The notes beneath the pieces were generated by a model that did not search any database, was not told where the DNA came from, and was given only the letters and a program-made list of their open reading frames with translations. DNA of 64,000 nucleotides from Azolla caroliniana. Lineage: Eukaryota; Plantae; Polypodiophyta. The DNA is taken from NCBI GenBank assembly GCA_043228905.1, contig JBHGNT010000018.1, positions 2,914,001-2,978,000 of the forward strand, read 5' to 3'. The position numbers and the translations under genes were made by a program. Positions 115 to 48,708 of the stretch are shown here, piece after piece. How positions within the stretch are numbered: the first letter of the stretch is position 1; every line of letters begins with the position of its first letter.

Positions 115-118
115 TATT

Positions 119-136: not shown

Positions 137-158
137 GGAGGCGGCAGAAGAGCAGAAG

Positions 159-2285: not shown

Positions 2286-2347
2286 AGAGGGCTGCCAAGG
2301 CGTGGGGCCGAGACAGTCCGGACACTCGGGAAAGACCCCACGACTGT
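2276..2347 (+). promoter_or_regulatory. Putative -1 ribosomal frameshift signal: G GAT TTT slippery heptamer plus downstream structure
   Basis: The heptamer (2276-2282) directly precedes the gag-PR stop. The -1 frame is open from here into pol. Complementary segments 2289-2294/2314-2319 and 2301-2307/2336-2342. Confidence 0.7.
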
Positions 2348-5748: not shown

Positions 5749-5808
5749 AGGCTGGACCGGTTTCCTCCGTCCCATCACAATTTGGCGCATGCCGGTGGAT
5801 GCGCGGTT

Positions 5809-5821
5809 AGGTGGGGGCGGA
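5809..5821 (+). promoter_or_regulatory. Polypurine tract of the Gypsy element
   Basis: AGGTGGGGGCGGA immediately before the TGTCG LTR start. Confidence 0.8.
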
Positions 5822-6459: not shown

Positions 6460-6787
6460 ACGTGATTTTCTTCGACCAGTAGCATCGACTAGAGATCGAA
6501 GAAGGAGAGAGGATTCTCCCTCGCGAGGACTGCACATTGTATGATGTTGAACCAAAGTGCTAGGCCTCCGAGGCACATCTGCACCATTTCGTCATCGTCA
6601 ATGTTGACATTGATCGACCCAAGCGAGTGGCACAACTCCTTGATCTTCAAGGTGTGGTTGCCGATTCACATATCCCTATGTTGTATGTTGTTCAACTATT
6701 GTTAGAGTTGAAGCTTTCATGTGGTTGTGTTGGTCGCGAATATCTTTTTGAGGTTACCACACGCCTCCTTTGGTGTTTTTGCCTCCT
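6460..6787 (-). pseudogene. Degenerate Copia gag fragment that the Gypsy element inserted into
   Basis: Minus-strand translation EAKTPKEACGNLKKIFATNTT...KLQL...TLKIKELCHSLGSINVNIDDDEMVQMCLGGLA resembles the Copia gag domain and contains stops. Confidence 0.7.
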
Positions 6788-6862
6788 GTTGGATTCCTAG
6801 CTCTCCGATGAAGTCCTTCATCCAGATTATCTCCTTGTCGGCTTCTACAACTGCCATGTACT

Positions 6863-7653
6863 TGACAGGAACTACACGTCCCCTATGCGCAACGCTCGGC
6901 CACAATTGATCTTAGAATCATACACCAAAAAAAACAGGAATGAATGCATGACACACTGAAGAGAAGAGTACACAGGATGTTTACGTGGAAAACCCAAACT
7001 AGGGAAAAACCACGGCAGCCCACAGGCTGCAAACTATCACTATGTTACAGTGTACAACAGTAAAGCACTGAGGCAACAACCTCGAACTTCTATCTTCGCC
7101 ACAGGCGGCGGTTACAACAGAGGCAACGACCTCTTCCCCTCTCTCTCTCTCTCTCTGTACACAGTTACGCGCTCTGATTTTGCACAAACAAGAATAACAA
7201 CAACTCTCTCTAAAAGTTTGCCCTAAGTCATATTTATACTAATATGACTTTTCGGCTATTTACAAATATAGCCACGATGGACTCTCAGAAACATATTTAC
7301 GAATATGTCTCTTCATCCAGTGAGCACTCCTGACCGGGTCTGCACCATCCGGCACTTGCCGGGTACTCGCCATCCGGTTCTCACCGGGTCTTCCGTTTCT
7401 AGGTACTCCTCATCCGGTTCTCACCGGGTCTGCACCATCCGGCTCTCCGTAGTCGGGTTCTCCTCATCCGGTTCTCACCGGGTCTACACCATCCGGCTCT
7501 CCGTAGCCGGGTTCTCCTCATCCGGTTCTCATCGGGTCTGTACCATCTGGCTCTCCGTAGTCGGGTACTCGTCATCCGGTTTCGGCCTCGGCTGAGTTTT
7601 CTCATCAGCACTGTTCTTCTTCCTTCCCATCCGGGGGGACCTGTCTCCCAACA
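6863..7653 (-). mobile_element. Copia-type solo LTR, 791 bp, inserted in the RNase H of element B
   Basis: TG...CA termini; 5-bp TSD GTACT at 6858-6862 and 7654-7658. Removing it rejoins STMEAEY with MAVVEADKE. Shares blocks with the LTR starting at 11342 (CGTGGAAAACCC, ACTATCACTATG, GGCAACAACCTCGA, CAGGCGGCGGTTACAACA). Confidence 0.9.
7404..7580. repeat. 54-bp tandem repeat, about 3.3 copies, within the solo LTR
   Basis: Unit CTCCTCATCCGGTTCTCACCGGGTCTGCACCATCCGGCTCTCCGTAGTCGGGTT, visible as an 18-aa periodicity in the ORF track. Confidence 0.9.
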
Positions 7654-10600
7654 GTACTCCGCCTCCATGGTTGACAACACAACCGTCTTCTGCAGCCTCA
7701 ACTGCCAGGAAACAGCTCCCCTTGCATAGGTCATGACATATCCGTATGTAGACCGGCTGGTATCCGCAATCAGCCGACATATCCGAATCCGTGAATTCGT
7801 CAAGTTGGGGATTACCAGAGCCAAACCGGAGGCACATACTCAAGGTGCCTTTCAAATACTGGAGTATCCACTTGACCGCGTTCTAGTGTTCTCTTCCGGG
7901 ATTGCTCATGAAACGGCTCACCACTCCGACTGCATATCCGATATCCGGCCGGGTACACACCATTGCGTACATCAAGCTTCTGACAACAAAGGCAAATGGT
8001 ATCTTCATCATATCTTCCTTCTCTATCTTTGTCCTCGGGCTCTGATTTCCGGATAGCTTGCAGTTTGTCAAAAGAGTCGATCCGACTGGTTTCGCATCCG
8101 ACATGTTGAACCGCTGAAGCACCTTTGTCACGTACTTCTCATGTGACAACCACAACAGCTTCTTCGACCGGTCCTGGATGATGTGCATACCCAATATCTG
8201 TCTTGCTGGACCCAAGTCTTTCATTTAGAAAGTCTGGTTCAGAGCCTTCTTCAGCATCTGGATCTTGCCTTGGTCTCATCCAACGATCAACATATCATCC
8301 ACATAGAGGAGGAGTATCAGAAAGTCTCCTCTGTCAAATTTCTTCACAAACACACAATGATCGGCTTGCGTTTTGTGGTACCCTTGGTCGGTCATGAAGG
8401 AGTCGAACTTCCGGTACCATTGCCGGGGGGCTTGCTTCAATCTGTATAGGCTCTTATTTAGCCGGCACACCAAGTGCTCCTTCCCTTTTCTCTCAAATCC
8501 TTCCGGTTGATGCATGTAGATCTCTTCTTCGAGGTCTCCGTGTAGGAATGTCGTCTTGACGTGCAATTGCTCTACCTCGAGGTCCATGCTTGCCGTTATG
8601 CCCAATATCGTCCGGATGGATGTCATCTTTACTACTGGGGCAAAGATCTCATCGAAGTCCACTCCTTTCTTCTGCTCGAAGCCCTTCACCACGATTCGGG
8701 CCTTATACCTTGGTGGATTTCTGGTGTCTCCTAGTTTTAGCTTGTACACCCACTTGTTCCGGAGTGTCCTTTGTCCTTTCGGCAACTCCACCAATTCGTA
8801 TGTGTGGTTCTCATGCAGGGAATCCATCTTGTCCTACATGGCACTCAACCACTTGTGGCTGTGGGTGTCTCCCCTTGCTTCTTCAAAGCTTTCCAGCTCC
8901 CCCTCATTGGTTAGCAACACACGCTCTACATCTAGAAATCTCTAAGGGGCTCTTCTTTCTCGGAGAGGATATCTCTGTCCTTGGCTTCTGACTACCGGTT
9001 CTTCCGTTTGTTCTGAATCCGAATCCGATTTGGGATCTTGTCTGGTTCTGGTGTCTTCTCCTTCTTCAGTCGGTTCGGTTTCTTGTTCGTATCCGGCCGG
9101 TTCGTGGAGTGTCATCCGGTTACCGGCTAACATCCGGCTTTCAACCGCGTAGGTCCTTGGGTCCTTAGGCCGGTTTTCATTGGATGATCCGGAGTTGGTC
9201 ATCTTCTTCTCCGACTCCCAGTCGGCAATGGTCCTGTCTTCCATGAAGACTATGTCCCGACTCCGGAACACCTTCTTGTCGACCAGATCCCACACCCGGT
9301 AACCGAACTCATCGTCGCCGTATCCAAGGAATGTGCATGGCCGGGACTTCGGATCTAGCTTTGCTCTCTTGTCCTTCGCCACATGCACGTATGCGAGACA
9401 CTCGAACACCTTCAGATGCCGGTAAGATACATCTTTACCGGTCCATACTTTCTGAGGTGTGTCTCCTCCCAAGGGTACTGAGGGTGATTTGTTTATCACG
9501 TAGGTCGTCGTTGTTAGCGCCTCATCCCAAAACTTCTTGGGTGACTTGGCATGTGCGATCATGCTCTGGACTCTCTCCATTATGGTCTGGTTCATCCTTT
9601 TGTCCAGCCCGTTTAGTTCCGGCATCTTTGGCACGGTGAATTTGAGTCGGATTCCCTTCGACCGGCAGTACTCCTCGAACTACCCCCAATATTCTCCTCT
9701 ATTATCTGCTCGAACCGCCTTCATCTTCCGGCTAGTTTCTCTTTCCACTCTCGCGTGGAGCTCCTTGAAGACGGATAGCACCTGATCCTTCGTCTTCAAT
9801 GGTGAGACCCACAACTTCCGGCTATGGTCATCTATGAACGTCATGAAGTACTACGATCCGGCATGTGACTTCGTGTCCACTTGACACACATTTGTATGCA
9901 CCAACTCCAGTGGTGCATTCCATCTCATCGGTGGTCTTGACTGGAAGGAGGTTCGGCAATAGGTGCACTTCTCAAGTTGCATGTCCTTCACTGGAATGAG
10001 GTTGTCTTCGGCAAGCCTCTTCATCCCCTTCTCACTCATGTGACACGGTCCTTTGTGCCACAACACACCGGCAATGTCGGAAGCAAGTACATCAAGTACA
10101 ATGTGTTGACTTTCCAGGCCCGAGCCACTATTAAGCTCCCCTTGCTTAACTTCAAGACTCCGTTCCGGAGGCTAACCGTATAGCCTTCATCATCTAGCCG
10201 ATCGGCTGATATTAGGTTCAGTCGAACATCCTTCAGGAGCAACTTGCATCCGGTTAGTGTCGTCAACCACACATCTCCTATGCCGACAGTTCGGGATGTA
10301 CCTTCATTCCCCATCCAGACACAGCCACCGGCTGTGTAGGATGAGAAGCATTTCCGGTCCGGGGTAAGGTGGAACAACGCTCCGGAATCAACAACCCACG
10401 TTGTCTCGTCGTCGGCAATGTTCAACTCACTCTCCTCGGTGATGAGCATTAGTTCTTCTTCACTTGCCGTGATCACCGTCGTTCCCTTCCAGTCCGGGCC
10501 TCGTCGATCCGAACCGTTCCGGTCCGGTGATTTCTTCGAATCGGTATTGTCGGTTCCCTTGTCTTTCCGGAAATGCCGACAGTTTTCTAGATGTGCCCCG

Positions 10601-11326
10601 GCTTGCCGCAATAGAAGCAAGTGGGCCTCCCCCTTGACTTTGACCGTGTCCCCGACTTTTCCCGGTTATGGGGACTCCGATTCCTTTGTCTTCCGCGTTC
10701 CGATTTGGTAAGGAGGGCTTTGGCATCAGAGATCACCTCCTTGTCTTTCCGACACACCTCCTCATCTAACAAGCTTGACTTGACTCTTGCTAGGGATAGT
10801 TGTTTTCCTTCCGGCCTGGTGTTGCCCAACTTGACAACTAACGTCTCCTAGCTATCCAGGAGGGAACCGAGTAGGAGTAGAGGAAGTACCTCATCGGCGA
10901 GAGGTACTTCCAATGAGGTTGCCCGATGTATCAGCCCCTGGAAGGCATTCATGTGCTCTGCCATACTGGAGCCATCTTGGTACCGGAGCCTCACCAGCTT
11001 TCGAAATACCGAAACCTGATTAACAACATTCTTGTTCTAGAACATGATGTTGGTCTTCTCCCAGAGTTCATGAGCCTTGCTCACTTCATTGAAGTTGTTG
11101 TACAAGCTCATGTCGATGAAGCACCGACTGTATGTCGTCGTCTTCATGTGCATCACCTCCCACACTATGGTGTCGATCTTATCCGGTCTCTTGTCCCCGA
11201 ACTGAACCGGCAACCAAAGATCTTTGACCACCAGCATATCCCTCATCTTCGACTTCCACACTGAGTAGTTGGAGCCGGTGAGCTTGAACATGCTGCCAAA
11301 CGATTCTTCCATTTTCTGTGTTGTTT

Positions 11327-11338
11327 GCTCTGATACCA
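11327..11338 (-). promoter_or_regulatory. PBS (tRNA-iMet) of Copia B
   Basis: Minus strand TGGTATCAGAGC, 3 nt from the LTR end. Confidence 0.93.
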
Positions 11339-11341
11339 TAT

Positions 11342-12012
11342 TGATGAGAATCGCAGAATGTTACTCGGCCACAACCGAGTCTAGAATCATAGAAAATGAG
11401 GATGGAATACACAGAATGGGAACTCAAGAGTGAACACAGGATGTTTTCGTGGAAAACCCTAAATGGGAAAAACCATGGGAGCCCATAGATTCTGAACTAT
11501 CACTATGAAGAGAAGGGGTACAATCAAAGACTTGTAGGCAACAACCTCGAGCTCGGTTTCTTTGCCAGGCGGCGGTTACAACATGTAAAAGAATATGTTG
11601 TGCGGAAGCGTGTGCGTAAACACAGAGTACACAGTTCGAAGGAATAAGAAGGTTGGATAAAACACAGGAAACGTAGAGATGGAGATGGAGAGAGAGAGAG
11701 AGAGAGAGAGACCAAACAACAGAAAAACTCCAATTCAAAATAATGACTCTCTCACTATACATCGTGCTCAATGAGCAGCTTTTATACAAGCCCTGACAGT
11801 TGGGCTGACACAAGAACTAACAGTACTTGAATGCTCATAAATGAGCTTACTACACTAACTCCCAAAATTATTCCTTATGAGGAATACCATACTAACGGCC
11901 TTCCAATTTACGCACAGATACGGCCACGTTATGTGTACTGTTTTACGCACCCAATCTACGCACTGGGTTACGTACCGTATTATGCACTCAATGTTGAGCT
12001 TGTCACTCAACA
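11342..12012 (-). repeat. Copia LTR, about 671 bp, possibly composite
   Basis: Minus-strand termini TGTTGAG...CTCATCA; PBS on one side and PPT on the other; TATAAAA near 11780-11786. Confidence 0.8.
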
Positions 12013-14650
12013 CTCCCCCTGAAGCTCAACTTGAGGTTCCGTCCGCTCTTCCGGATCTATGCTCCGGTTCCTTCTGGCTTTACACCTCGCTCGCGCTCCT
12101 CGACCCGTTCGATTCCGCGCACTTTGACCCTTTTGGTCGGCTTGTCTACTCGTTCGGCCCTTCCCAACTCCCTTGATGTCGCAGTGTTGGCGCGTCCTCC
12201 ACTGCCCTTTTCTCCGCATGGTCTTCAGTTGATTCAGTGTATCCGAATCAAACATTCCGATTGAATCGAACTCTTCCGATTCAATTCCGCTCTCATCCGA
12301 ATTGGTTGCCCTCGGCTCTTCCCTACGGTTATGGCCCTTGCTCTTTTCTTCGACTTCTTCAGCCGTCCCGAAATTGAATTCTTAATCCGATTCTGCGTCA
12401 CGGTCACTTCCGCCCCGATGAACACCTCCTCTCCTTTCACGCTCTTGTTCTTGTTCTTCCTTTCTCCCCCTCAAGTTCGGCGTGTTGAGGTGACGCAACC
12501 CAAGCTCACCCGAGAAATGCTGTAACTTGTCGAGACCAAGAGGCTTGGTGAAGATGTCGGCAACTTGCCGATCAGTCGAAACATGCACTAGGTCGACTTC
12601 ATCTGAAAGGACCCTCTCGCAGACAAAATGGTAATGCACCTCAATGTGCTTGGTCCGAGCGTGGAACACGGGGTTTTTCGCAAGGTGGATACTGCTGAGG
12701 TTGTCACAATAGATCGTCGTCGGATCAGACACCTCTACATGTAGATCCCGTAATAGCCGTTTTAGCCAAATGACCTCGCACGCAGCAACAGTTGCCCCTC
12801 GATACTCGGCCTCCGTGCTTGACAGTGCTACTGTCGGCTGCTTCTTACTACTTCATGCGATCGCTGCACTTCCCAAGGAGAATGCGTACCTGGATGTGGA
12901 TCTACGACCATTGGCATTTTCAGCCCAATCGGCATACGTGTAGCCAACTAAGTGTTCGACTACACCTACTCGATATAGCAACGCCATGTCTTTCGTGCCG
13001 CTTACATATCGCAATATCCTTTGTGTGCATTGAAAGTGTTCGGCCGTAGGCTGCGACATAAATTGACTGATTAAGCCGACTGGGTAGCTAAGATCCGACT
13101 GAGTAATCGTCAAATAGATAAGGCTTCCGATAATCTGTCGGAACCGTGTCACGTCACACGCCTTGCCCGAATCTGGGCGAAGCTTCACGTTTCTGTCCAG
13201 AGGGGTTGAGATGGGTCTACAATCTGCCATCCCGAACTTGAAGAGCATATTCAGCGCGTAATCACGCTGGCTGATCAATATGCCTTCGGGGGTATGGATC
13301 ACTTCGATCCCGAGGAAGTAATGAAGGTCTCCGAGATTCTTGATTTCAAACGATGCCGCAAGCTGAGACTTCACACGACGGATTTCGTCAAGATCGGCAC
13401 TAGCGATGACTAAATCGTCAACGTACAAGAGCAGGCTGACCGGTCCATATTGACCTCGCCAAACAAATAGAGAAGAGTCTGATTTCGACGGCGCAAACCC
13501 CATCCTTCACAACTGTTGCGTAATCTTTGCATTCCAAGCTCACGGGGCTTGCTTTAGTCCCTATAAGGACTTCTTTAATCGGCAAACTGCTGAGGTGTTT
13601 TGTTCAGATAGAAATCTGGGGGGTTGTACCATGTACACCTGTTCCTCAAGATCACCTTGTAGGAACACATTCTTTACACCCATATGATGTAAGTGCCACC
13701 ACTTTGCCGCTGCTACGGCTAGCAGGACTCGCACGGTAGTCATCTTTGCAACAGGCGCGAAGGTCTCATCATAGTTCACGTCGTGCTTCTACGCATAGCC
13801 TTTAGCTACTAAACGGGCCTTGTAGCGGTTGACAGAGCCGTCCTTGTTGTATTTCACTTTATACACCCACCGGTAGTCGATCGGCTTCACACCCTTCGGT
13901 GCGTCAACCAGGTCCCATGTCTCATTCTGCGTTAAGGGGCGCATCTCTTCCTCCATCGCGGCACGCTAATTTGCGTCTTTCGTTGCTTCTATATAGCTCT
14001 CCGGCTCACGCACTTCCACCACTCGCGTCATATACACATAATGGTGCGCCATATATTCATTATACCCGTACCTCTTTACGGGGTTCTTCTAGCGGGTAGA
14101 TCGGTGTAAATCGTGATTACCCGATTTAACGGCTTTTTTGGCCGATTTCAACATCTTCTGTAGAGGTTCATTTTCGACTAGCTCGAGGTCAGATTCGCTT
14201 CGAACTGACTCGGCACTACTGAAATCGTATTCCAACGTCTTCTTCTTCCCCTTCTCCTTGCGCGTAAACTGTCTCCTCGGTTCTTTACGCGGGGGCATCA
14301 CGGCCGAGTCTCCACTACTCACAGTCTCATCATCTAGTTGGTCATCTCGGCCCAACCCCTCATTTGGCCCGCTTAGCCAAAATGAGATCGGACTCTCTCT
14401 TAGAGCTCCGATTTCTTCATCATGCGGAGGCATTTCGACCTCGCTAACATCGTCCTCAGAATTTGGAATGGAGTCATGAGGAGTTGGAGGTGAAGGCAAG
14501 TACCATGAAGCGAACTCATCGAACACGACATCTCGGCTTACGCGTACTTCCTTCGTTCGGGGGTTGTAACACTTATACCCCTTCTGCTCGTTTGAATAGC
14601 CGACCAAGATACATTTCTCGCCTTTGGTATCCAGCTTCCTCCTTTTCTTC
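12013..14650 (-). mobile_element. Ty1/Copia retrotransposon C, 3' half (integrase C-terminus, RT, RNase H, PPT), 5' truncated
   Basis: KLDTKGEKCILVGYS; NYDETFAPVAKMTTVR; LLLYVDDLVI; IYCDNLSSIHLAKNPVFHARTKHIEVHYHF. PPT AGGGGGAG at 12013-12020. Stops present. Confidence 0.93.
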
Positions 14651-15702
14651 GACCTTAAGGTTAACAGCCATACGCTATGACCAACTAAGCTATTGAAGCA
14701 ACATGCATGGCAACAAATACCAACTAACTTGAGATTTGCAAAACACCATGAAATAATACGAAGATCAATACTGGTTATTTTCAGTTCCAAGGTGCGCGTT
14801 TACAAGACAACATGACCATCTTCACTATATCTCAATGTTTGAAGCAGCAACATGCATTGCAACAAATACCAACTAACTTGAGATTTGCAAACACCATGAA
14901 ATAATACGAAGATCAATATTGGTTATTTTCAGTTCCAAGGTGCGCGTTTATAGGACAACATGATCATCTTCACTATATCTCAATGTTGGGCATCAAACTC
15001 AAGCATCATATTCTTGTTTTTAGTCTATATATCAAATCAATCTCATGAATTATACATTTATCAACATTCATCATATTTATCTACGCTCCAAGATGGGCTT
15101 GAACCACCGACCTTATGGTTAACAGCCATATGCTCTAACCAACTGAGCTATTGAAGCAATTTGAAACAAATAACATGAGATTTGTAAAACGACATGAAAC
15201 AATATGACTATCAATATTGGTTATTTTCAAATCCAAGGTGGGCATGAACCACCAATGTTATGGTTAACAACCATATGCTCAAACCAATTTTGCTATTCAC
15301 GAAAGGGAACTAAACTTAAACATATATTTTTACTTTATAGGATCTAAACAACATGATCATCTTCACAATATCTCAATGGTGGGTTTGAAACATTGTCATC
15401 ATATTCTTGTTTTTAGTCTATAGATAAAAAGATCAAACACATGATTTATACATTTACCAATCTTTTTCATATTTATCTACTCTCCAAGGTGGGCTTGAAC
15501 CATTGACTTCATGGTTAACAACTATACATTGTAACCAACTAAGTTATTGATGCAATGTGAAACAAATCTAACTAACTTGAGATTTGCAAACATTATGAAA
15601 CAATATGATGATCGATATTGGTTATTTTCAGTTCCAAGGTGGGTTTGAACCACCAATGTTATGGTTAACAACCGTATGCTCAAACCAATTGAGCTTTTCA
15701 AG
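14650..15702 (-). repeat. Decaying tandem array of tRNA-Asn copies (about 400-bp unit with two tRNA copies)
   Basis: tRNA-like segments at about 14650-14698 (partial), 15084-15157, 15231-15300, 15480-15553 and 15631-15702. Spacer sequences also repeat, e.g. TTGGTTATTTTCAGTTCCAAGGTG and ATGATCATCTTCAC. Confidence 0.88.
15084..15157 (-). tRNA. tRNA-Asn(GTT); structurally complete but may be a pseudogene
   Basis: GCTTCAATAGCTCAGTTGGTTAGAGCATATGGCTGTTAACCATAAGGTCGGTGGTTCAAGCCCATCTTGGAGCG folds as a cloverleaf: acceptor GCTTCAA/TTGGAGC, D GCTC/GAGC, anticodon arm TATGG-CTGTTAA-CCATA, T arm GGTGG-TTCAAGC-CCATC. No oligo-T terminator nearby. Confidence 0.8.
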
Positions 15703-24100: not shown

Positions 24101-26591
24101 CGCCTATTTTTTCATGCATACAGTGCTTGGATATGGAGAAGAATTCATGTTTTGAGTAGTATCTTGGGCATCAATACATGATACATGGTGTTCTTATATC
24201 TCTTTCTTGTTGAACAAAATCATTGACATTAACTACTATTGGAGACAAACCATTTTGTTTCGGTGAAGCCTTTTCAATGTTCTCAAGATAATGATCTTAC
24301 GACCATCTACTAGTAATAAACCACCACATTAATGTTTCAACATCATAATCATTATGCTATGTTTGCGATTATGCTAATGACACGCATTGTGTACTTACAA
24401 TCACTCATAAGTTATAGATCTACAATAAAGAGTAATACTATATGGACGTTAGTACTTAGAACCATTAAATATACTAAGTATCATGATGCCATCCTAGAAG
24501 GTCACGCAACACCATGTGTGCATTAATGCCATGTTCGAAAGGTTTAACATCCTTCTATACATTTCCATTTCCAAGCAATGACCCCACGACCTTTTGAGGA
24601 TTATATAATCATTGATACACTACAAAGATTTAAGCTATTTATATAATTACATCACATGGGTGTTTTGACCATGAATACTCAATTGTACTTTATTTAGATA
24701 GCCAAAAAATTTACAAGTGACTAAAATATGCTATAGTAGAAATGCGACATATGACCAATCTCAACGTAGAAGGTCATTTGCCAGAGTTTGGAAGCCTCCA
24801 TTTAAAAAACCTAAATCACAACCAGTATACCTTTGAAATAATGTTGACATTCATCTTGCAACTTCATTATGAGTATATTTACTCCAAGTTTTCTCACTCG
24901 TGCAAATAGATATGCATAAAAACTTCCCTTTTGTATGTCGTCCTCCGTTTTCTGTTTCATCTTGAGCGATTACGTATTCAATACACACTTTGTCATTTGA
25001 CAAGAAGACCCTTCATTTCACCTCAAGTGAACACGTAGGCAAGGATGCTAGTACCAAAATTCATTATGTCGCTATCAAATTCTTTTGGAAAAATGTGTTT
25101 CAAATACACAAACTAGATAAAAATATGCGTCACCTTCACTTGTAATTTGTAGGCATAGTCTTAAGGACCAAACCTAAAGCTAAATTTATTAGTTTAAAGG
25201 TAGGATAAGAGGGAAGCTAGTTATCCTCGGACTTTGGACAAACCCGTAAGGATGCATTTATACATGGTAGTTTGGAAACTTGGGCATTGGTTTATATAAA
25301 GGGGTCTTCATTACGACATCTTGAGACACGCTCGAGACTCGATTGTTGAGGCTAAGCTCCCTTCTTTGGATTAATGTTAGGTAACAACCAAGGTAAAACA
25401 TATAGTAATATTAGATGTTATGTTTCTCTCATATTCTTCACTTTGGGTGGTCGATGTACATAGTTAAACACCCTTAATCTATTCTCTTCCTTAAATATCT
25501 TATTATATTGCTCACCACTAATTTGATTTGTAAAAGCTACACACACATTTCGGTTTGGAAAACCTTGAAGTGAGGGTCAAGGCTAAGAAAACATGTTTAT
25601 GATTGATTGGACATAATGCAAGCATGGAATATAATATGCTATAAATATGCCCACCAATGCCATATAGACACATAACAAATGCACGTAATGGGGATCATTA
25701 GAGGAAAAACTTGAATAGCATATTCGAACTATAAAAGCATATTGGCCAAATTTTGTTGATCGTGAGTAGTCCAATCGCACACACTCACATACATAAGCAT
25801 TATAATATGATAAGTGGGTTCAAACAAGGGGAAGAGGGTGAAGGTTGTCCCCTCTTCGAAAGATAAGTAGAAAGCAGAGAAGAAAAAATAATGTGGGTAA
25901 GGAAGGAGGAGTCATAGTTCGTTTATAAATTTAAGAAAGCACATAGACAATGAACCAATAGATAACAAGGGCATTAAATGCATAGCTAGGACTTCACCTC
26001 GGAAATTGACCCTATATCGAAATAGATACGCATTGCTTCTCATTCACACCAAAGGGTATCGATCGATCGTTAGATGATTGATTCGACTAATAATTCGGAC
26101 GAATTCGAGCGACAGGTTTGATTAAAATCAATTCCAGCTTCGAAACAAAATAGGAATATTAATAAACAAAAAAAAAAAACTGAAAAAGGAGGAGAAGATT
26201 GGCAGGTAGTCAGTTATCTCGAGAGTTTGAAAATATGCGATATGTGTGTGTGTGTCGTTACGTTAGGAAAATGAAAAGGAGATATGCAGGTTGGGGTCAT
26301 CATCCACCAAGCAAGTGTGTGTGTGTGTGTGAGCATGTGAGTGAATGAGACGTAACACTTGGAAAAGTCGAACCAGAAGGCGAGGTATCATCATCGGAGG
26401 AGGAGGCCAATGCATGCCGTGTGAGGGGTTTTCGGAATTCGAAAGTAGGGTTTCGAGGAGTAGCGAAGACTACAGGAAAACAATTCAATAGCATCCCGGC
26501 AAGAGGCAGTGTGAAACGAGATCTCCTTGTTAGAGGGACGCGTTTCCGATGTCCAGCCCACCCCCGCATTCTCTTCTTTCGACCCCCGGGC

Positions 26592-26593
<2 letters not shown>

Positions 26594-26643
<50 letters not shown>
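26594..26643. repeat. (GA)n microsatellite
   Basis: Directly visible. Confidence 0.95.
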
Positions 26644-26646
<3 letters not shown>

Positions 26647-26659
26647 GCCCTTAGGTTTT

Positions 26660-27276
26660 GTTGACCTTGCAGCTGAGCTGGATCAACCACCGCCACATCA
26701 GCACACCATGAAATTTCAGCTAGGCCTCTGCTGACATGGCAGCTGAGCTGGATAACCGGCCGCCACGTCAGCGGGAAGGGGGGGATAAAGGTTTCCCTTT
26801 GGTTCCCGCTGACCTTGCAGCTGAGCTGGATCAACCACCGCCACGTCCGCGCACTGAAAGTGGTCCCTGCTGACATGGCAGCTGAGCTGGATCAGCCACC
26901 GCCATGTCGGCAGAACGCTAGGAGCTGCAGGGAGGGAGGGAGGCTTGGGCGGGTGCCCCTGCTGACCTGGCAGCCGAGGTGGATTAGCTACCGCCACGTC
27001 GGCAGAGTGCGCGTGGTGTATGTAGGCAGGCTTCGGCGACGTGGCCCCCCCTGCTGACCTTGCGGCTGAGCTGGATCGGTCTCCACCACGTCAGCAGCGC
27101 GGCGGAGGTGGTGTAGGTAGGCTTGGGCAGCGTGCCCCCCTGCTGACCTTGCGGCTGAGCTGGATCGATCGCCGCCACGTCAGCGGAGGATGGGAGCGGG
27201 TGTACATAGTTAAGCCTCGGGCGTGTGGTCCCTGCTGACAGGGCAGCCGAGCTGGATCAACTGCCGCCATGTCAGC
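26660..27276. repeat. Array of eight 43-bp imperfect palindromic repeats with variable spacers
   Basis: Copies start at 26660, 26730, 26808, 26869, 26961, 27053, 27142 and 27234. Approximate consensus GCTGACMTKGCAGCTGAGCTGGATCAACCACCGCCACGTCAGC. Spacers are 27, 35, 18, 49, 49, 46 and 49 bp. Confidence 0.93.
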
Positions 27277-27319
27277 ACAGGGCGAAAGCGTATCCAGCCT
27301 TAGGTGTGTGTATGGCCCC

Positions 27320-27393
27320 CCTTCTTCTTCTTCTTCTTCTTCTTCTGTTGATTCTTCTGCTTCTTCTGCTTCTTCTTCTGTTGATTCTTCTGC

Positions 27394-27432
<39 letters not shown>

Positions 27433-27441
27433 TTCTTCTTC
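27320..27441. repeat. (CTT)n/(TCA)n trinucleotide microsatellite in the COI1 upstream/5'UTR region
   Basis: Directly visible. Confidence 0.9.
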
Positions 27442-28012
27442 TGCCAATTCCATACCATAGCTCTCTGTGGCTCCACCATCAGAGCTCTCCCTGAACCCTC
27501 GGATTGATCCAGCCATCGCCTCGAGGTCTCCCATCTCTGCTCCCCCCCCCCCCCCAGAAACTAGTTCTCCATCTAATCTCCCTGAACCAGTTGCGTTCTC
27601 CGGCCGAATCTGTACCCACCCAGGAGGCCAGAGCTCTCCATGGAATCTTGATCAACCCCCCCCCCCCCCCCCCCCAAACTTGGTTCTTTTTACATCTTCC
27701 AAAGAAATCGAAGAAGCCTCTGACTTTGTTTTTCTGAGAAAACACTGAGAATTTCTCCCTTTTCTTTCTTCTGGGCCTCACCAATGGGTCAAATACCATC
27801 TCTACCTGTATTTGGTGGACAAACAATACCAGAAAACTGCCCCCTACCGATCGGCCTCCTCCTCCGCCGCCCAAATCTAGTTCTGAAATGAATAGCCCAC
27901 ATCAGCCTCTCTCACTGGCACAAATCAAGAAAATCAGAAGACAGTTCCCCCCGAAAGCAATCTAGATTGCACTGTTTTTCTTTCTCTCTACTCTTTCCAA
28001 CTTGAGATCACA

Positions 28013-29658
28013 ATGGGTCACAAATTGCCTCTCATCTCCAGAGGAGAAGCCATACCGGAGACGGCTCTCGAGTTCATCTTCAACTACCTCGACAACCCGA
28101 TCGATCGGAGCGCCGCGTCTCGGGTATGCAAGAAATGGTACAATGTGGACGGGCGCACACGAAAAGACATAACCATAGTGTTGTGCTACTCCATCGATCC
28201 CCCAACTCTACCGCACCGATTCTCAGCACTAGAGGCTTTGAAGCTCAAAGGTAAGCCTAGGGCTTCGATGTTTAAGCTTGTTCCCGAAGATTGGGGCGGA
28301 TATGCCAAGCCTTGGGTCTCCGTTATTACTGTGCATTGTCCATGCCTCAAATCTATACACTTCCGGCGAATGGTTGTGGATGATGATGATCTGGTTACCA
28401 TTGCTCAAGGGATGGGTAACATGCTTCAGGTGCTTAAGCTCGACAAGTGCTCAGGTTTCTCAACTAATGGATTGGAAGCGGTCACGAGATCTTGCAAGTA
28501 AGCCATTTATCTCCTCTTTCTCAAATGCTTCTTCTGTGTTCTTGGCTTGTGTTACAATGTCTTTATGTGTGTATGAATATGTGTTCCTTTTCTTGTGTTC
28601 CAATGTGTGTGAATGAGGGTGTCCAGCATAGATAGGTGGTTATATATACTTGCCTTAATTCCATGGGAAAGATAGAAACATCGACATGGATTTAATCTTC
28701 CGCAGGTGTTATCCGTAGGCAAAAAATAACCCTATTTCATCACAGCAGAAGCTTAAGAAAAAACAAAAAAAAAAGCCCATCATGACAGTAAACATTGGAA
28801 GCTTCCTATAAGATCTGAGTCAGTGACAATGCATCCAGAATTTCTTGAATGTGATGGTAAGTCATAAGATTACATTTGAAGGAAATTTCTTGAATGTGAT
28901 GGTTTATATGAGTACATTGATGGGTTGTATGGAAAGGAAACATAGAAAAGGAAATTTAAAACTCCATGATAAACCATGGTCTTGAAAGAATCCTATGCTA
29001 AAGATTGTCTTTGAGAATCCCTTGTTCAAGGGGCGAGAGTCTCGATTCTTACAGTGCTTCTTCTTTCTTTGTTAATGCTTCCTCCAGATCTCTAAGAGTG
29101 CTTCTTCTGGACGACAGCATTATCCAAGACCATGGAGGGACATGGCTACGCGAACTTGCGATTCACAGCAAATGTCTGGAAGTGCTGAATTTCTATGGAA
29201 CAGATCTTCAAAACATAGATACAGAAGATCTTCTAACTATAGCCACGAATTGCAAAGGTCTTATCTCGCTAAAGCTCAGCGAATTTAAGCTCGAAAGCTT
29301 GATGCCATTATTGAGCAAATCAACATGCCTAAGAGAATTAGGGGGGCTCTGTTTAGGTTCGAATGACGGAGTAAACATAGATGTTAGGTTACCATCTACA
29401 CTAACATCGTTGGTGGGTCTATATTATGCGGGTGCAGACGAGGGTGATGCGGTGATAAATCAAGTGATACGACCGATCGCATCGGGATTAAAGAAGCTCG
29501 ATCTTCAATTTGCATTCCTGAGTGTGAGTGGTCACTGCCAGCTTCTCAGCTCTTGCACCAATCTAGAAGCTCTGGAGGTACTTACTGCTCATTCATCCAT
29601 GCTCTGTCATGCATCATTATATACATATACATATATATACATATACATCTTTACACAC

Positions 29659-29690
<32 letters not shown>

Positions 29691-29778
29691 ACATATACAT
29701 ATACATACACACACATATATATATGGTGTAAGATCCCAAATCATAATATTGACAACATATATACACACATATACATAT

Positions 29779-29816
<38 letters not shown>

Positions 29817-30642
29817 GGTGTAAGATCCTAAATCATAATATTGAATGGTTCTCTCTTCATTGTAGGTGTTCAATGCCATTGGTGATGAGGGATTGGAGGT
29901 TATAGCGAACAACTGCAAGAAGCTTCGTAGGCTCCGTGTGGAACGAGGCGACCGAGATGTGCAGCAAGGATTCGTGACTCAGAAGGGGTTAACCGCAATC
30001 GCGTTGAGTTGCCACCAGCTCGAATACATTGCAGCATATGTCTCAGACATCGACAACGCGGCCCTAGTCACGATCGCATCGAATTGCCCAAACCTTAGAG
30101 ACTTCCGGCTGGTTCTTCTAGACGAGGGCAACGATATCTCGGATTTCCCCCTCGATGATGGTGTGAGAGCCCTAATGCAAAAATGCAAGTGTATGCACCG
30201 GTTTGCGCTCTATTTACGGCCGGGTTGTGTCACGGACCGCGGCATGAATGAGATGGGGATCTACGGGAAGAGCCTAAGGTGGGTGCTCTTCGGATTGCTA
30301 GGTGAGACAGACATGGGGTTAAGCCTCTTTGCCGACTATTGCCAAAGCTTGGAGAAGCTCGAGATCCGGGACTGCGTGTATAGCGAGGCCGCGATCGCGT
30401 CCGCGGTGCTGAAGATGAGGTCATTGAAGTATGTGTGGGTGCAAGGGTATAAGTCGAGCGGGAGTGGGCAAGACCTATTACCGCTTTGTAACGCGTGCTG
30501 GAGGGTCGAGTATATACCGGCCACAAAGACGATCGATGGCATGGAGCAACCCGTGCAATTCGTGGCGTACCGGTCACTTTCGGAGAGATGTAGGGTCGAT
30601 CATCCTCCGTCCGTCATTCTTCTCAATGAGTCCATGGTGTAG
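28013..30642 (+). CDS. COI1: Coronatine-insensitive 1-like F-box/LRR jasmonate receptor; exons 28013-28497, 29088-29577, 29866-30642 (583 aa)
   Basis: F-box start; LKLKGKPRASMFKLVPEDWGGYAKPW; LRRLRVER; LEYIAAYVSDI; DFRLVLLD; FALYLR; KLEIR; YVWVQGY. Both GT-AG introns keep the frame (AA|GTAAGC...CCAG|A and GAG|GTAC...GTAG|GTG). Three-exon layout typical of COI1. Confidence 0.95.
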
Positions 30643-40683: not shown

Positions 40684-42306
40684 ATGTTGGTGCATGATTC
40701 AATCAAGACCATTGTAGATGGTGTGTGGAGGAGGAAGTGGGAGATATACTATGGAATTGGCATAGTTTCCCTTTTGGGAAACCTGATTGCTTTGTTCATG
40801 AGAGCCTTAGATGTGAATATCTTGAGTTTGAATCATGTTTGTGCAATCACAAGATGTGTTGTGTCAAAGCTAGAGGAGGTTGTGGTGGTTTTCCATAGCT
40901 TCATTGTACCCAATGTGGTGGTTTTCCATGGCTTCATTTTGAGCCATGTAGTGGTTTTGTGCGAGCTAATGACAAAGAGGGGTGTGCTTTTCCTCATCTT
41001 CAATCTCATCTTGGTGGTTTTGATGATCAAATCAGGCCTTCTCAACAAGACTCTGTCCCATATCATCACCTCCTCTTCCCAATCTCAAGAGTTTCCCAAT
41101 TGGGAAACATCGCTCATGGGTGGTGCCAATCCTATTGGCCACCCCAACCCATCCTCAACTCACCCTTTACTTTGTAGCTCCACCACCCATCCTTCGGAAG
41201 ATCAGAATCGCCCATCTCAGATTTGGCTTCATCCAACCCATCGTTCTCAAGATCTCCACCGCCCATCTCTAGCTTTGCCCGATTTAGCCCATCCCTATAC
41301 CTTTCCCGTTAAGGAAACCTCCAAATGTCCGGGCAATAATCCTACAAGCCCATCCCACGGCGATGGCCCATCGCGAATTACCTCCGGTACAATAGAAGTA
41401 TGCCACGTGGCAGGTCATGAAGTGGCCCTAATCCACCGTGGGTCTTCCCAGCAAGCTGACGTGGCCAATCTTCGTCCACTCGTTCGTTGCCAAGTGGATG
41501 CCATTGTGGCCACTCGTGAAAGCTCGCAACATGGACCACTCATAAGTGGTTGCCAAGTGGACACCTTTGTTGCCACTCATGAAATCCCACAACATGGACA
41601 ATCCCATGGATGCCAAGTGGCCAACGTTGTCCCTATTTATGAGATCACGCAACAAGAACCAGTGGTTGCTTGCCAAGTGGACAACACCCTCGGTACTAGC
41701 CCGAAACATGAACTAAGTCTTGCATGCCAAGTGGAGCCGAAGGACGCCCCAACTCATGAGTTGATACAAGATAGACCAAGCATTGCTTGCCAAGTGGCAG
41801 AAAACAACTTGGTACCTCCTTCCCTAACATTGCATACACCAATAACTAGGTGCCAAGTGGACAACAAGGATATGAGCCATGAGTTAACACAACATCGACA
41901 AATCATTCCAAGCCAAACACCCAACGTCGTTGGCAGAACTCATGGGTCTAGACCGCGTGGACAAATTGGAGGGAGTTATGGAGAAAAGAGAAAGTCTTCC
42001 AAATTAAGCTTATTCACCATAGAGCCCCTAGAGGAAACTGAGGACAAAGACAAAGTCATGGAAGCATCGATGGATAGTGCTTGTGTTCGTCGTGATGGAA
42101 ATGAGATGGCACACCTAGAATTACAAGAGACATGTGGAGATAATGAGTTGGAGTTTAAGGAAAGGATCGATAACTTTATCTCGAAGTTCAAGAGGAGTCT
42201 CACTATACAAAGGCAAGAGTCTCTCACTCGTCTCCTTGCACTCGTGGGAGCATGCCCCCCTCCCCGTCCTAAATTGTCCTTTGTACACAAAACCTCCCGT
42301 GAATAG
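40684..42306 (+). CDS. Intronless DUF4408/DUF761 (cotton-fibre-expressed-like) membrane-anchored protein, 540 aa, with internal CQV repeats
   Basis: Long ORF in AT-rich DNA. Hydrophobic LFLIFNLILVVLMIKSGLL is DUF4408-like. C-terminal EFKERIDNFISKFKRSLTIQRQES is DUF761-like. Confidence 0.75.
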   Translation: MLVHDSIKTIVDGVWRRKWEIYYGIGIVSLLGNLIALFMRALDVNILSLNHVCAITRCVVSKLEEVVVVFHSFIVPNVVVFHGFILSHVVVLCELMTKRGVLFLIFNLILVVLMIKSGLLNKTLSHIITSSSQSQEFPNWETSLMGGANPIGHPNPSSTHPLLCSSTTHPSEDQNRPSQIWLHPTHRSQDLHRPSLALPDLAHPYTFPVKETSKCPGNNPTSPSHGDGPSRITSGTIEVCHVAGHEVALIHRGSSQQADVANLRPLVRCQVDAIVATRESSQHGPLISGCQVDTFVATHEIPQHGQSHGCQVANVVPIYEITQQEPVVACQVDNTLGTSPKHELSLACQVEPKDAPTHELIQDRPSIACQVAENNLVPPSLTLHTPITRCQVDNKDMSHELTQHRQIIPSQTPNVVGRTHGSRPRGQIGGSYGEKRKSSKLSLFTIEPLEETEDKDKVMEASMDSACVRRDGNEMAHLELQETCGDNELEFKERIDNFISKFKRSLTIQRQESLTRLLALVGACPPPRPKLSFVHKTSRE

Positions 42307-44319: not shown

Positions 44320-47300
44320 GATTATGTACAAATCCCTAAAGGGACGCGATAGTTCCATCTAATGTGGAAGCCCACTGACTCAAGAAAGGGAGAGGACGAC
44401 CATTGTTGGATGAAGGCTATGCGTTGTCTTTCAACTCCCTCGGAGCCACCTTTAAGGCCATCATATTGGCTCTTCAGAGTGGCTACAATTTCACTCCATA
44501 TCTCTTGCAGTAACCTTGTTGGATGGGTGGTTTGGTTGGAGAAGACTCGCCTACATCATTGTTTCCATAGAATCCAATGGGTTATTGGGCTAACCAATTC
44601 CAACACCTCTTGAGATTTGTCATTAAGAGGAATATAGTGGACATTGCCGCTGGAGGAGAAAAGAACCTCTTGTGCTTTTCTCACCAAAGTCATCCCCTCA
44701 TCCTGATGCTCGTATCGGCCAATTGCAGCATGCCATGATAGCCAACATATATTTCCCCACTTGATTGAACCTTGCACCTGGCATAATTGCAACAAGCGGC
44801 CAACCCCCCGCCATATTCTATGGGACGTTGGGCAGTCCCACAAAGCGTGTCGTATGGATTCTACTGCATGTGGGCACTCTACACAATTAGGAGAGCTAAG
44901 GTTCCCACGTTGCCATGCTCCCACCGGTAGGGACTTATGTATTAACAGCCATTGGAAAGTGGTAATTCGCCTCGCGTGTTGTTGCTTCCAGATTTTCTGC
45001 CAAAACTTGGTGATTATTGCGGAGGGAACTTGAAATGTGTACCAGACCTTCGCAACAGCCGGTTCTCGGGCGGCTTGAGCAACTAGAATGTGGCGACCCA
45101 ATCTAGTTGTGAATTGGAAGAAAGGGATGGGTTTGCTTCCTTGCCCCACATAGGGATCACGCCATGTCCATTGCAAAGGGTCCCAATTGACCTTACGTAG
45201 CCATGTGTTTTCATGAGTACATATATGCCAATCGGGTTGTACTTTGATCGGATCAGGATCTACAATCCATTTATGACCAGTGTACGCGAGTACTCGAATG
45301 GTGTTATTCTGTGTGGGTGTCTCAGTATCTCGCAATTCATGGCCTTCGAGCCTGTCTGGTGATCCCCAACCTCTCGGGATCAGAGAACCCTCCTCCTCGT
45401 GTCCTATCCATTTCTCCATTGTCGTCCTTTGAGTAGCAGATTCCCTAATCAGTAGCGCGTTAATGATTTCCGATCTCATAGTCCATCCGCCCCTGATTCC
45501 ATGGAGTATGTTCGCTTGATCTTGTAGTGGCATTGACATAAACCGTCGCCAACATTCTATACTTTTGCCTGGACCTTCTGCAATGTATCCCCATGACAAC
45601 CCCTTCCGTGATCCCAGTAGTTGATTATATTCATCCTTGAGACATGGGTTCCATAGGATACGTTGACTGAGCCAGGTAGGTTCGGATCTCGGTTGATCAC
45701 ACTGGAGCCCTCGACGAATGTCACACCATGCCTTCCACATGGATGCACTGAATCTGTCCTCCAAATGGCGGGAGAAACTAGGTTTGAGATCCATGTTTAG
45801 AATCCATCCCGTTTGGGGGGCCCAATTGACCCTTTTTCGTGGCCTAAAGTAAGTGAAACGTAACCTCAGTAGCATTTTCAAACAATCATTTCCTGGTTGG
45901 AGTCCTCGCACCACGAATTTGGCAAGTAAGGCTTTCGATTGTGAAAGGGGATCAATAAGACCCAATCCCCCTCTCGACTTAGGCGTTGTGAGTATAGGCC
46001 ACGCCACCTTGGTGCGAGCTACATGGTCTTCCTTACCAGACCAAATGTAGTTGCAGACCAGTCGTTGAATTTGTGTATACTTTCCTTGGAGATTGTCCAA
46101 CATGATAGACTGTACCATGTTGTTGCGAGGAGTACCTGATTTGCCACTATGATGCGACCTGCTAGAGACAATTTTTTAGAGCTCCAATGTATCAACTTTT
46201 CTTGAATGGAAAGGATAACGGGTGCAATCATAATCTCCGGTGGTATGTTGAAGCCAATTTGGAAGCCCAAATATTTGGTGCTCGCTCCTTGATTGATCCA
46301 CTTGAAAGCGGGGTGTGGGTGCCACGCCGGAAGTGTTTCCTGAGAAAGCCATATTGCACAGGATTTGTGCCAATTGATCATGGTGTTGGATCGCTTGCAA
46401 AATAAAACTAGCCCACTTTCTAGCTTTTGGAGGTTTTCCAGGTCCCCTTGCAGGTAGACTGCTGTGTCATCTGCAAATTCTATATCCAGGATGCTTTGGT
46501 AAGAATGAGGTATGGGAAGACCACGTAGGTTGAGATGCCGCGAGTTGAGAAAGCAAGAGAGTGCTTCGGCGTATAATAGAAATAAGGATGGAGCTAGTGG
46601 GCATCCCTACCGTTGTCGTAGTGTAGGTTGCACACTATGTGGAAATTATATTGGAACCACCGACTCACGCAAACGATCCGGAGCCGAAAGGCACGACACC
46701 GTACCGAGTGGAATATTCGGAAAAAGGGGCCCCTTTCACATGCCAGCGAAACGCAACTGCTGCCATTCCTATAAAATCCTGCAATGCCTTTGATCCATGT
46801 CTCTTGAAAGCCGAGTTTCCTCATCACACTTTCTAGAAAGTTCCAGCATACCCTATCATAGGCTTTCTCAAAATCTAGTAGCACCACCGCTACCTTCTTG
46901 TTGGTCTGCTTGGCAAGGGCTACTGCTTCCCAAAATGAGAAGAGGTTGTCTAGGATGCTCCGATTTCTAACGAAACCTGTCTGTGATGGATGAATGAGTT
47001 GAGAGGGAAGTGGAGTTAAACGGCGTGCCACGATTTTTGCGAACAACTTATAGACAGTATTGAGAAGAGTAATGGGCCGCCACTTGTGAATGTCGTTGGC
47101 ATTCCCACCACTTTTAGGAATGAGATGTATCATCCCCTGTCCAAATTCCTCCAGCATGCTTCCAGAGGTGATGATCTCCTCATATGCCTGGAGGAGGTCT
47201 TCTTTAATAGTGCCCCAAAGGCATGTGAAAAAGTGCAGGGTGAGATCGTCAATTCCAGGGCAGCTCTCGGCATCTAAATCAGTGAGGGCCTCCCATATCT

Positions 47301-48708
47301 CAATGATTGATAGGGGACACACAAGCCAAGTATTCATTTCCGGTGTGACTTTCTTGGGTATGCTTTGGAGGATAATATCATCGCTTATGTCTTCCCCTGT
47401 AGCTATCATGTCTTCGGTAAGTAGGCGGCTATAATACCTTGTAGCAATATTCCTCATTTCGTCGCCATCCTCAGTGGTTGTTCCATCCTCCCGGTTGAGG
47501 TTGTGCATCACAGTTCTAGCGTGCCTCGGGCCTTTGGAGCGGAAGAATTCCTTTGTGGTTTTGTCCCCTACTCGAATCCATCGCGCCATGCTGCCATGAA
47601 ACTCCATGTCATATATTGCCTTTTCTGCCATGCTAAGTTCCTGTTTGGCCGTGGCGACTTGTCCTGCGATCCAACTACAGGATGGGTATCTCTGTTGGAG
47701 TCTTTGTAAGGCTATTAGTCCCCGTTTTGTCCTCTGTCGCTTCTCCTGAGCATCCTTGCGTCTAGTCTTGACAATCTCATGTAGGAGAGTAGAGGCTCTT
47801 GTTAATTTAGCTAAAAGTTTGTCCGATGCTGATGAGCCATTGACGGGTAATGACGATTGGTTGGATAGTTGGTCCTTCACGTCTATAAGTGTGTAAATAG
47901 TGTGTGGGATGCGAGTCTGGAATGGGCCCCATTTTCGATGCAATTGAAAATGACCAGCTATCGGGTAATGGTCAGAGAAAGTCGTGCCTGGAGTTATGTG
48001 ACACCACCCTCCCTTCGCTTCTAAAGCCTCCCCCACATAAATGCAGTCAATGCGAGATAGGGTGGGTCCACTATTCCGCCCGTCTGATCGGGAGAATAGG
48101 AGAGAGTCCCTTTTCCATTGGAAGTTGGCAGAATGCCAGATGTCTCGCAGGTTAAGGTGGACACATAGCTTCTCCCATTGTTTGCGTTCCCTTCCTTGTA
48201 GAACTATGGGATTGTTGTTGGAGCTATCATGAATGGATTCGATCATATTAAAATCCCCTCCAATGCACCACTCTTCCGCACCCACTACTTGTAGGCGGAT
48301 GCGGTCCCAGAATGTTGCTCTTTCTGTTCTGTTATTTGGAGCATAAACATTCATGAAGTTCCATCGTTGCCCTTGGATGGTTAGCGTGCAAAAATGTGCC
48401 CTACCAGGTATAAGTGATTCTTGGTGTATTAAGCCTTGGGCTAGACGTTCCCGAATGAAAGTGCAAATACCACCATGATTTCCATCCTCCCCAATTGCTG
48501 GCTCCCAAATCGTTCGCCATGATCCCGGTAGAAGGTCTCCAACTTCCTTTAACTGTGTGCTATCGAGGTGGTGTTCCTGCAACATGATGATGTCAGCACC
48601 ACTCCCTAGTAAATGTTCTTCAAGATCCCTTCTCAGTTTCCATCTATTTTGCTGGTCTAGTCTACTTCTGAGTCCTTGCACGTTCCATGTTATAATCTTC
48701 ATACTCAT
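44320..48708 (-). pseudogene. LINE ORF2 (endonuclease, RT, zf-RVT), disrupted
   Basis: Starts MSMKIITWNVQG at 48708. Broken by an 85-bp insertion (46614-46698), stops, and a frameshift near 46075. 3' end approximate. Confidence 0.9.
46614..46698. mobile_element. 85-bp miniature solo-LTR-like insertion
   Basis: TGTCGT...ACGACA perfect 6-bp inverted termini flanked by CCGT direct repeats. Excision restores the RT motif SVR(Q/*)GCPL. Confidence 0.85.

Follow-up and report, generated by a model that had tools for sequence, protein, structure and literature searches.

An old ~90-bp minisatellite upstream of a fern COI1 gene, with a 43-bp core that may be a multiplied protein-binding module

The subject of this article is a tandem repeat array that lies upstream of a COI1/TIR1-family F-box-LRR gene in Azolla caroliniana. 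By the window we mean the whole stretch of DNA that was analysed, 64,000 nucleotides (64 kb) in length. The first open reading frame of the gene (28013-28498, with the ATG at 28013) contains F-box_5 and Transp_inhibit domains, and when the three exons were searched separately the best named relatives were COI1 proteins. The nearest relatives of each exon are fern sequences (Adiantum, Ceratopteris and transcriptome assemblies) with 55-76% identity; the identity to COI1 proteins of seed plants is about 50%. The array is located 691 to 1372 bp upstream of the ATG, so that the distance of 0.7-1.35 kb given in the preliminary description of this DNA agrees with the 0.69-1.37 kb that we measured. 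There is no open reading frame of at least 130 amino acids between about 15 kb and the array; hence the array belongs to the upstream region of COI1. The relevant features are as follows.

26000-27322, no strand: CpG-rich, GC-rich island that holds the array, CpG observed/expected 0.64-1.36
26594-26643, + strand: (AG)25 microsatellite, adjoining the 5' edge of the array
26641-27322, + strand: whole minisatellite of about 8.5 periods, descended from a unit of about 90 bp; it runs from an incomplete leading spacer through eight 43-bp cores, with seven spacers between them, to a full ninth spacer
26660-26702, + strand: core unit 1, GTTGAC...CACATCAGC, its ACGT gone through a CpG-to-CpA change
26730-26772, + strand: core unit 2, intact CCACGTCA octamer, arms complementary at 10 of 11 positions
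26808-26850, + strand: core unit 3, CCACGTCC
26869-26911, + strand: core unit 4, CCATGTCG, the best hairpin; its 5' flank GTGGTCCCT is common to units 4 and 8
26961-27003, + strand: core unit 5, CCACGTCG, central block with two changes
27053-27095, + strand: core unit 6, intact CCACGTCA octamer, 90% identical to unit 7
27142-27184, + strand: core unit 7, intact CCACGTCA octamer
27234-27276, + strand: core unit 8, CCATGTCA, left arm TGACAGGGC
27277-27322, + strand: ninth (terminal) spacer, alignable with spacers 4-7, holding the right-hand CCTTAGGT
27321-27442, + strand: (CTT)n/(CAT)n tract, adjoining the 3' edge of the array
28013-30639, + strand: COI1/TIR1-family F-box-LRR gene, coding exons at about 28013-28498, 29086-29589 and 29851-30639
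Segments singled out within the cores: GCTGAC, GAGCTGGAT and CCACGTCA

The window otherwise consists mostly of retrotransposons. Its first 15,000 positions (1-15000) form a GC-rich block (50-61% GC, with strong skew) of nested LTR retrotransposons, where a Gypsy-type integrase occupies 4177-5451 on the + strand with DUF4100 on the same strand, and Copia-type open reading frames with RVT_2 and SH3_retrovirus occupy 12853-14790 on the - strand. A LINE with endonuclease, RVT_1 and zf-RVT domains extends across three open reading frames at 44556-49688 (- strand). An intronless open reading frame of 540 amino acids at 40684-42306 (+ strand), whose only match is a weak C-terminal one to DUF761 (cotton fibre expressed protein), is possibly a gene of the plant. 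Within COI1, intron 2 (29590-29850) is largely a compound microsatellite of (TA)n/(CA)n type, and it produces long spurious open reading frames rich in Y/I/H/T and C/V. A second local duplication (direct-repeat families D4, D6 and D7) occupies 27480-27690, in the interval that separates the array from the ATG; in it the pattern CAGAGCTCTCC(C/A)TG ... C14-20 ... AAACT(A/T)GTTCT occurs twice, 119-149 bp apart. Both of its copies contain poly-C runs (27542-27555 and 27656-27675), and it is probably because of these runs that the short-read contigs of a close relative, described below, break here.

Direct reading, a direct-repeat finder, a degenerate pattern search and a script all agree on eight indel-free units of 43 bp, all on the + strand, which span 26660-27276. 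The spacers between them measure, in order, 27, 35, 18, 49, 49, 46 and 49 bp. A degenerate pattern of 24 nt has eight matches in the 64-kb window, each of them a unit of the array, whereas 100 shuffles gave none. No further copy in the window came up when either the unit or the full period was used as a profile, and the full-period profile matches all eight positions with E values from 1e-10 to 7e-23. Tandem Repeats Finder (TRF) reports a period of 89 bp over 26937-27189 (2.8 copies, 78% matches). Thus the units follow each other head to tail, in a single orientation and with a common period, as is expected of a minisatellite. The preliminary description had already noticed eight exact 43-bp copies without indels, the same spacer lengths, and the location of the block between (GA)n and (CTT)n tracts; all this is borne out by the pattern search, by the script and by the (AG)25 run at 26594-26643 and the (CTT)n run from 27321. 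Two of its statements need correction. It gave a degenerate consensus for the two arms of the repeat, and while the units themselves stand, the consensus arms are not found in every one of them: unit 1 has GTTGAC and CACATC, unit 3 GTCCGC, unit 6 ACCAC and unit 8 ACAGGGC. It also treated the array as eight repeats with seven spacers, which is right for the repeats and overlooks a complete ninth spacer after unit 8 (27277-27322). Further, the conserved segment reaches some 4-6 nt more in the 5' direction (CCCT) than the 43-bp unit.

In a whole-period alignment of periods 4-8, where the sequence 3' of unit 8 up to 27322 was counted as spacer, spacers 4-8 can be aligned with each other (...GTAGGCAGGCTTSGGC...GTGSCCCCCT), and therefore the object is a minisatellite of about 90 bp with 8.5 periods. 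Spacers 1-3 are shortened and retain only remnants of their ends, such as GTGGTCCCT and TAGGCC. Homology thus runs across the full period, well beyond the core, in spacers 4-8 and in the leading flank. This suggestion, that the array originated from a ~90-bp tandem unit in which the 43-bp core was better kept, was made in the preliminary description, and the TRF period, the spacer alignment and the column counts given below all support it. The array also starts and stops in the same phase of the period. We consider it to be an old, gene-specific minisatellite in which a segment of about 90 bp was copied head to tail for 8.5 periods, and this anatomy is seen directly. Most of its properties are shared with plant minisatellites in general: head-to-tail copies, a period of 10-100 bp, degeneration of the copies, a microsatellite on either side, and greater divergence and rearrangement of the copies towards one end. 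It differs from them in a marked difference of rates within the period and in a 43-bp segment that is strictly free of indels.

The phase of the array ends decides the fate of another idea. The octamer CCTTAGGT is indeed present as a direct repeat at 26649-26656 and 27298-27305, and in the preliminary description it was regarded as a possible 8-bp target site duplication (TSD) of a non-autonomous DNA transposon, in which the units would be subterminal transposase-binding repeats. The right-hand copy, however, sits at the GGCTTGGGC position of the period, and the left-hand copy is located in the partial leading spacer, whose homology to spacer 8 covers about 26 nt and takes in bases to the left as well as to the right of the octamer. 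A TSD would not show homology that continues into the element on one side and outside of it on the other, thus the CCTTAGGT pair is not a TSD. We searched for terminal inverted repeats (TIRs) and found none at 26657/27297 nor around the GC-rich island; the inverted pairs that do appear are either arms of the units or a single low-complexity 17-mer. The latter (26395-26411 and 27850-27866, 94% complementary, of GGAGGAGG/CCTCCTCC type) brackets the GC-rich island, but it is low-complexity, is not accompanied by a TSD, and its right arm, the sole arm that falls within the contigs of the relative, differs there. With neither TIRs nor a TSD limited to the flanks, the array lacks what characterizes hAT-like elements, and the main evidence for a transposon falls. 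Arrays of subterminal repeats in hAT and CACTA elements do resemble the array in their short motifs with partial dyad symmetry and in the apparent 8-bp direct repeat at the flanks. The resemblance ends with the absence of TIRs and of a true TSD, with the single orientation of all units and with the restriction to one locus in 64 kb. Retrotransposons are abundant in the window, which agrees with a mobile origin in a general way, but no transposase is encoded nearby. On the evidence of the 64-kb window we therefore regard a transposon remnant as highly improbable.

Nor is this a CRISPR array, with which the locus shares a visual pattern only, namely repeats of fixed length and less similar spacers. 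Here we agree with the preliminary description, which used the term CRISPR-like and stated that this is not a true CRISPR. The locus is eukaryotic and nuclear, with a spliced plant COI1 gene among retrotransposons; its repeats are 72-93% identical; its spacers, 18-49 bp in length, are homologous to each other; and no cas genes are present. In public metagenome DNA the array was not found, and a 32-nt unit pattern gave there two single chance matches on bacterial contigs. Neither the CRISPR-like nor the transposon reading is supported, whether one takes a functional or a neutral view of the array.

What remains to be explained is the difference in rate between core and spacer, the one respect in which the array is more than a minisatellite in simple decay. 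Among the eight units, the mean pairwise identity is 82% (range 72-93%), 26 of the 43 columns are invariant, and GCTGAGCTGGAT is exact in six units, with one change in unit 8 and two changes in unit 5. Across periods 4-8 the cores have 28 invariant columns, 15 variable columns and no gapped column, whereas the spacers have 10 invariant, 29 variable and 18 gapped columns; the difference in invariance is significant (Fisher p = 4e-4). The minimum number of changes per column is 0.37 in the core and 1.0 in the spacer, the Jukes-Cantor distances are 0.23 and 0.56, and the core has evolved about 2.5 times slower. Our own tally, made on the lengths of the spacers and the alignment of whole periods, comes to at least 9 indel events, with the large losses in spacers 1-3 included; all of them are in spacers and none in the 344 bp of cores, which under a uniform spread has p ~0.003 with the tallied count as input. 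That spacers are far more divergent than repeats was also stated in the preliminary description, and both the distances and the confinement of indels to the spacers agree with it. Within the core, the best-kept stretch is the 5' two thirds, which reads (CCCT)GCTGAC and then GC-R-GC-Y-GAG-S-TGGAT, with CCCTGCTGAC...GCRGCYGAGSTGGAT as the best-kept block. Columns 25-30 are hypervariable. The whole may be written as a block of fixed length, 43 to ~49 bp, CCCT-GCTGAC-NNN-GCRGCYGAGSTGGAT-N6-CCRCCAYRTCNGC.

Constraint on the core is what these numbers suggest to us, as judged from paralogous copies inside one array. A neutral minisatellite without any function is possible as well, though we consider it somewhat unlikely; the gap between core and spacer would then reflect uneven mutation, due to G-runs and CpGs in the spacers, or the history of a small array. 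Several points are on its side. Such repeats are frequent in plant upstream regions, the block lies between two microsatellites, and the second duplication (D4, D6, D7) shows that local duplication has occurred again just downstream. The spacers contain GGGAGGGAGGGAGG and runs of C and G, and their G-rich, slippage-prone composition could be the cause of a higher mutation rate. The 26 invariant columns out of 43 in the core are near the ~22 that a hand calculation gives for about 28 randomly placed changes. To this one may add the decay of the ACGT box through CpG transitions and a consensus dyad that is within chance, both of which are treated below. However, a rate gap of about 2.5-fold together with the absence of core indels (p = 4e-4 and ~0.003) is hard to obtain from composition alone. 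Age is the second difficulty. The spacer divergence of 0.56 is about five times the neutral divergence of ~0.11 to the nearest relative that we found (contig L010 compared with the introns and leader of the window), so the array is probably older than the split from that relative. If the array does predate the species split, as seems probable from these distances, its cores have persisted and are still recognizable after a long time.

It was further proposed that the dyad symmetry of the repeat suggests selection, either for a protein dimer site or for a repeated RNA hairpin. We agree that dyad symmetry is present, but it is not compelling. The consensus has a dyad of 9 out of 11 positions, and an inverted repeat that is at least as good occurs in 27% of 2000 shuffled consensus periods; the consensus dyad is thus within chance if one corrects for the freedom in choosing its position. 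A dyad of 10 out of 11 (units 2, 4 and 8) is reached by 2.4% of shuffled periods. As to folding, copy 4 does form the hairpin that had been described (-25.5 kcal/mol, z = -4.4). Folding is stronger than in shuffles for units 2, 4, 5 and 7, borderline for unit 8 (z = -1.8) and no stronger for units 1, 3 and 6; the whole array has z = -2.8 on the + strand and z = -4.1 on the - strand. Good folding, though, is to be expected of any imperfect-palindrome repeat. In the alignment of the eight units, 84% of the cells in the 11-bp outer stem are paired, compared with 18-52% in slid controls. Not one of the 11 stem pairs has both of its partners changed, and the covariation score is the same as the mean of shuffled alignments. 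RNAalifold favours a different and weak structure. Covariation and RNAalifold analyses had been recommended as a check on a selected RNA hairpin, and their outcome lends it no support.

Hence, it is very hard to give credence to a structured RNA, in which the units would either form hairpins within a long leader of COI1 and hold back its translation, or act as precursors of small RNAs. The folding of several units and of the whole array better than shuffles is in its favour, and so are the transcript leaders of two distant orthologues, of which L013 begins in an (AG)n tract and L006 in unit-like sequence (see below). Rfam gives a weak MIR5516-like hairpin at the junction of units 2 and 3, where the former contributes its right arm and the latter its left arm; its 28.7 bits are far under the gathering score of 93 for that family. 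Zero compensatory changes in an 11-bp stem, and three units that fold like shuffles, stand against it.

The base composition around the array is consistent with a regulatory region. The CpG observed/expected ratio is 0.27-0.58 in the surrounding AT-rich DNA, 0.64 in the array, 0.8-1.1 in the exons and 0.9-1.36 over the 600 bp that precede the (AG)n tract. The strongest CpG enrichment nearby is that of 26000-26400, with a ratio of 1.36 at 40% GC. The array thus lies at the edge of a CpG-rich island of a kind typical of unmethylated regulatory regions, with signs of some CpG decay, and the pattern is compatible with a promoter element as well as with partial methylation of a tandem repeat. This raises the case of the Arabidopsis genes SDC and FWA. 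PMC2582956, with reference to Henderson and Jacobsen 2008, states that the promoter of SDC has tandem repeats to which siRNAs and non-CG methylation are recruited. By analogy, the repeats upstream of COI1 would draw small-RNA-directed DNA methylation and make the gene silenceable. The parallel extends to several points: a short tandem array located just upstream of one gene, a unit of tens of bases, and the fact that SDC is also an F-box gene. The array ratio of 0.64 is lower than the 0.9-1.4 of the adjacent island, and all three losses of ACGT in the array are CpG transitions, which are expected under some germline methylation. On the other hand, 0.64 is still higher than the methylated background of 0.27-0.58, and the fixed length of the core amid decaying spacers is left unexplained. 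SDC and FWA are targets of RNA-directed DNA methylation (RdDM), whereas the present array, which is read from sequence, has a longer period of about 90 bp, consists of a conserved core and decayed filler, and belongs to a fern lineage. We think that an epigenetic module is distinctly improbable.

If proteins bind the core, bZIP factors are among the candidates. In some units the right arm of the core contains the octamer CCACGTCA/TGACGTGG, which the preliminary description identified as an ACGT box bound by plant bZIP factors. This is a documented target. TGACGTGG is a G-box-like element for which the bZIPs TGA1 and GBF compete (Schindler et al. 1992, as listed in PMC9360754), while PMC3645738 gives TGACGTGG/A as the core of the UPRE and includes CCACGTCA in the plant pUPRE. 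The idea that this box is the conserved part of the repeat does not hold, however. The octamer is intact in three of the eight units (2, 6 and 7), and ACGT is present in 5/8 right arms and in none of the 8 left arms. The right arm varies exactly at its CpG: CACGTC is found in five units, CATGTC in two and CACATC in one, so the three losses are all CpG transitions. Since the octamer is the least well-kept arm, bZIP binding cannot alone account for the conservation of the core. In comparison with known clusters of ACGT elements (the G-box-like TGACGTGG/hex, as-1/ocs, and the UPRE with CCACGTCA), some of the units bear the motif in full, and the sites are placed head to tail, as in synthetic multimer reporters. 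They differ in the incomplete presence of the octamer and of ACGT just described, and also in spacing, since as-1/ocs elements are tightly spaced whereas the units of the array are 61-92 bp apart.

The TGAC of the arms offers other leads. W-boxes, as well as the sites of TALE-homeodomain proteins, have TGAC at their core, and this tetramer occurs as TTGACC in unit 1 and as TGACAG in unit 8; the arms may therefore be read as candidate sites of either kind. To our knowledge, there is no element that could be named with confidence for the best-conserved block, that is GCRGCYGAGSTGGAT together with GCTGAC.

With these pieces in hand we can state the reading that we prefer, to which we give a probability of roughly one half: the array may be a tandemly multiplied protein-binding module that acts on the transcription of COI1. 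A segment of about 90 bp from the CpG-rich region upstream of COI1 would have been duplicated head to tail to 8.5 periods. In each period a block of 43 to ~49 bp would have been held at fixed length and allowed to change about 2.5 times more slowly, while the remainder decayed through substitutions and took up all of the indels. Each core would then represent a composite site for sequence-specific proteins, with a putative bZIP half of the G-box-like TGACGTGG type and arms that contain TGAC. Taken together, the units would make up a homotypic cluster, in effect an upstream element multimerised by nature, which could set the level or the inducibility of COI1 transcription. A multimerised COI1 enhancer was among the options listed in the preliminary description, and it is the best surviving one, on indirect evidence of constraint within the array; what has to be given up is the ACGT box as its conserved part.

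Sequences of relatives bear on this reading to some extent. A homologue of exon 1 (P0269), 95% identical, is present on three metagenome contigs from ENA (L010-L012), which are 88-92% identical to the window over the introns and over the aligned leader and exon 1. These contigs end 160-210 bp upstream of the ATG, that is, short of the array. The ENA assemblies that go with this relative, which is diverged by roughly 10%, are ERZ27227298, ERZ1034407 and ERZ1034405. Look-up returned no exact record of the exon-1 open reading frame of the window. We also sought related arrays through the spurious open reading frames that such arrays would contain (four open frames, in exact and profile searches); the result was blank and carries no weight. 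The closest full-length relatives, P0159 and P0160 (~70% identity), have transcript leaders of 220-350 nt. The longest leader, L006, starts with GCTGATGTGGC and has TGCAGCTGAGCT 95 nt further in. It has a 12-mer and an 11-mer in common with units of the array (p ~0.02 against shuffles), and the sharing of 10- to 12-mers has p ~0.01-0.03 in 2000 dinucleotide shuffles. The transcript L013 begins in (AG)10, which is followed by two GAGCTGG. Against the transcripts and leaders of distant fern orthologues the unit profile gave no significant match (best E ~0.2), and three other orthologue leaders gave nothing. The occurrence of unit-like sequence and of a GA tract near the start of fern COI1 transcripts may thus be taken as a weak hint. 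The likenesses of L006 and L013 would also allow the array to be part of a long leader, or of an intron in such a leader, instead of the promoter.

A bolder version of the preferred reading takes in this hint, and we find it rather unlikely. The array would be an ancient selected multimer of eight phased 43-bp modules, each with two arms of TGAC type, an invariant GAG-TGGAT centre and a G-box-like half, which tunes the jasmonate receptor of ferns and has left relics in the COI1 leaders of distant species. If true, it would be a rare case in which the copy number of an upstream repeat determines how a hormone receptor gene is expressed.

As a structure, the array belongs among the ordinary features of plant promoters. 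If it is a neutral minisatellite, it is routine genome texture. If, as we prefer to think, its cores are real binding modules, the locus would be a natural experiment on the regulation of a hormone-receptor gene in ferns, in which the number of units could differ among relatives and scale the expression of COI1, and the 43-bp module would be directly testable as a fern cis-element.
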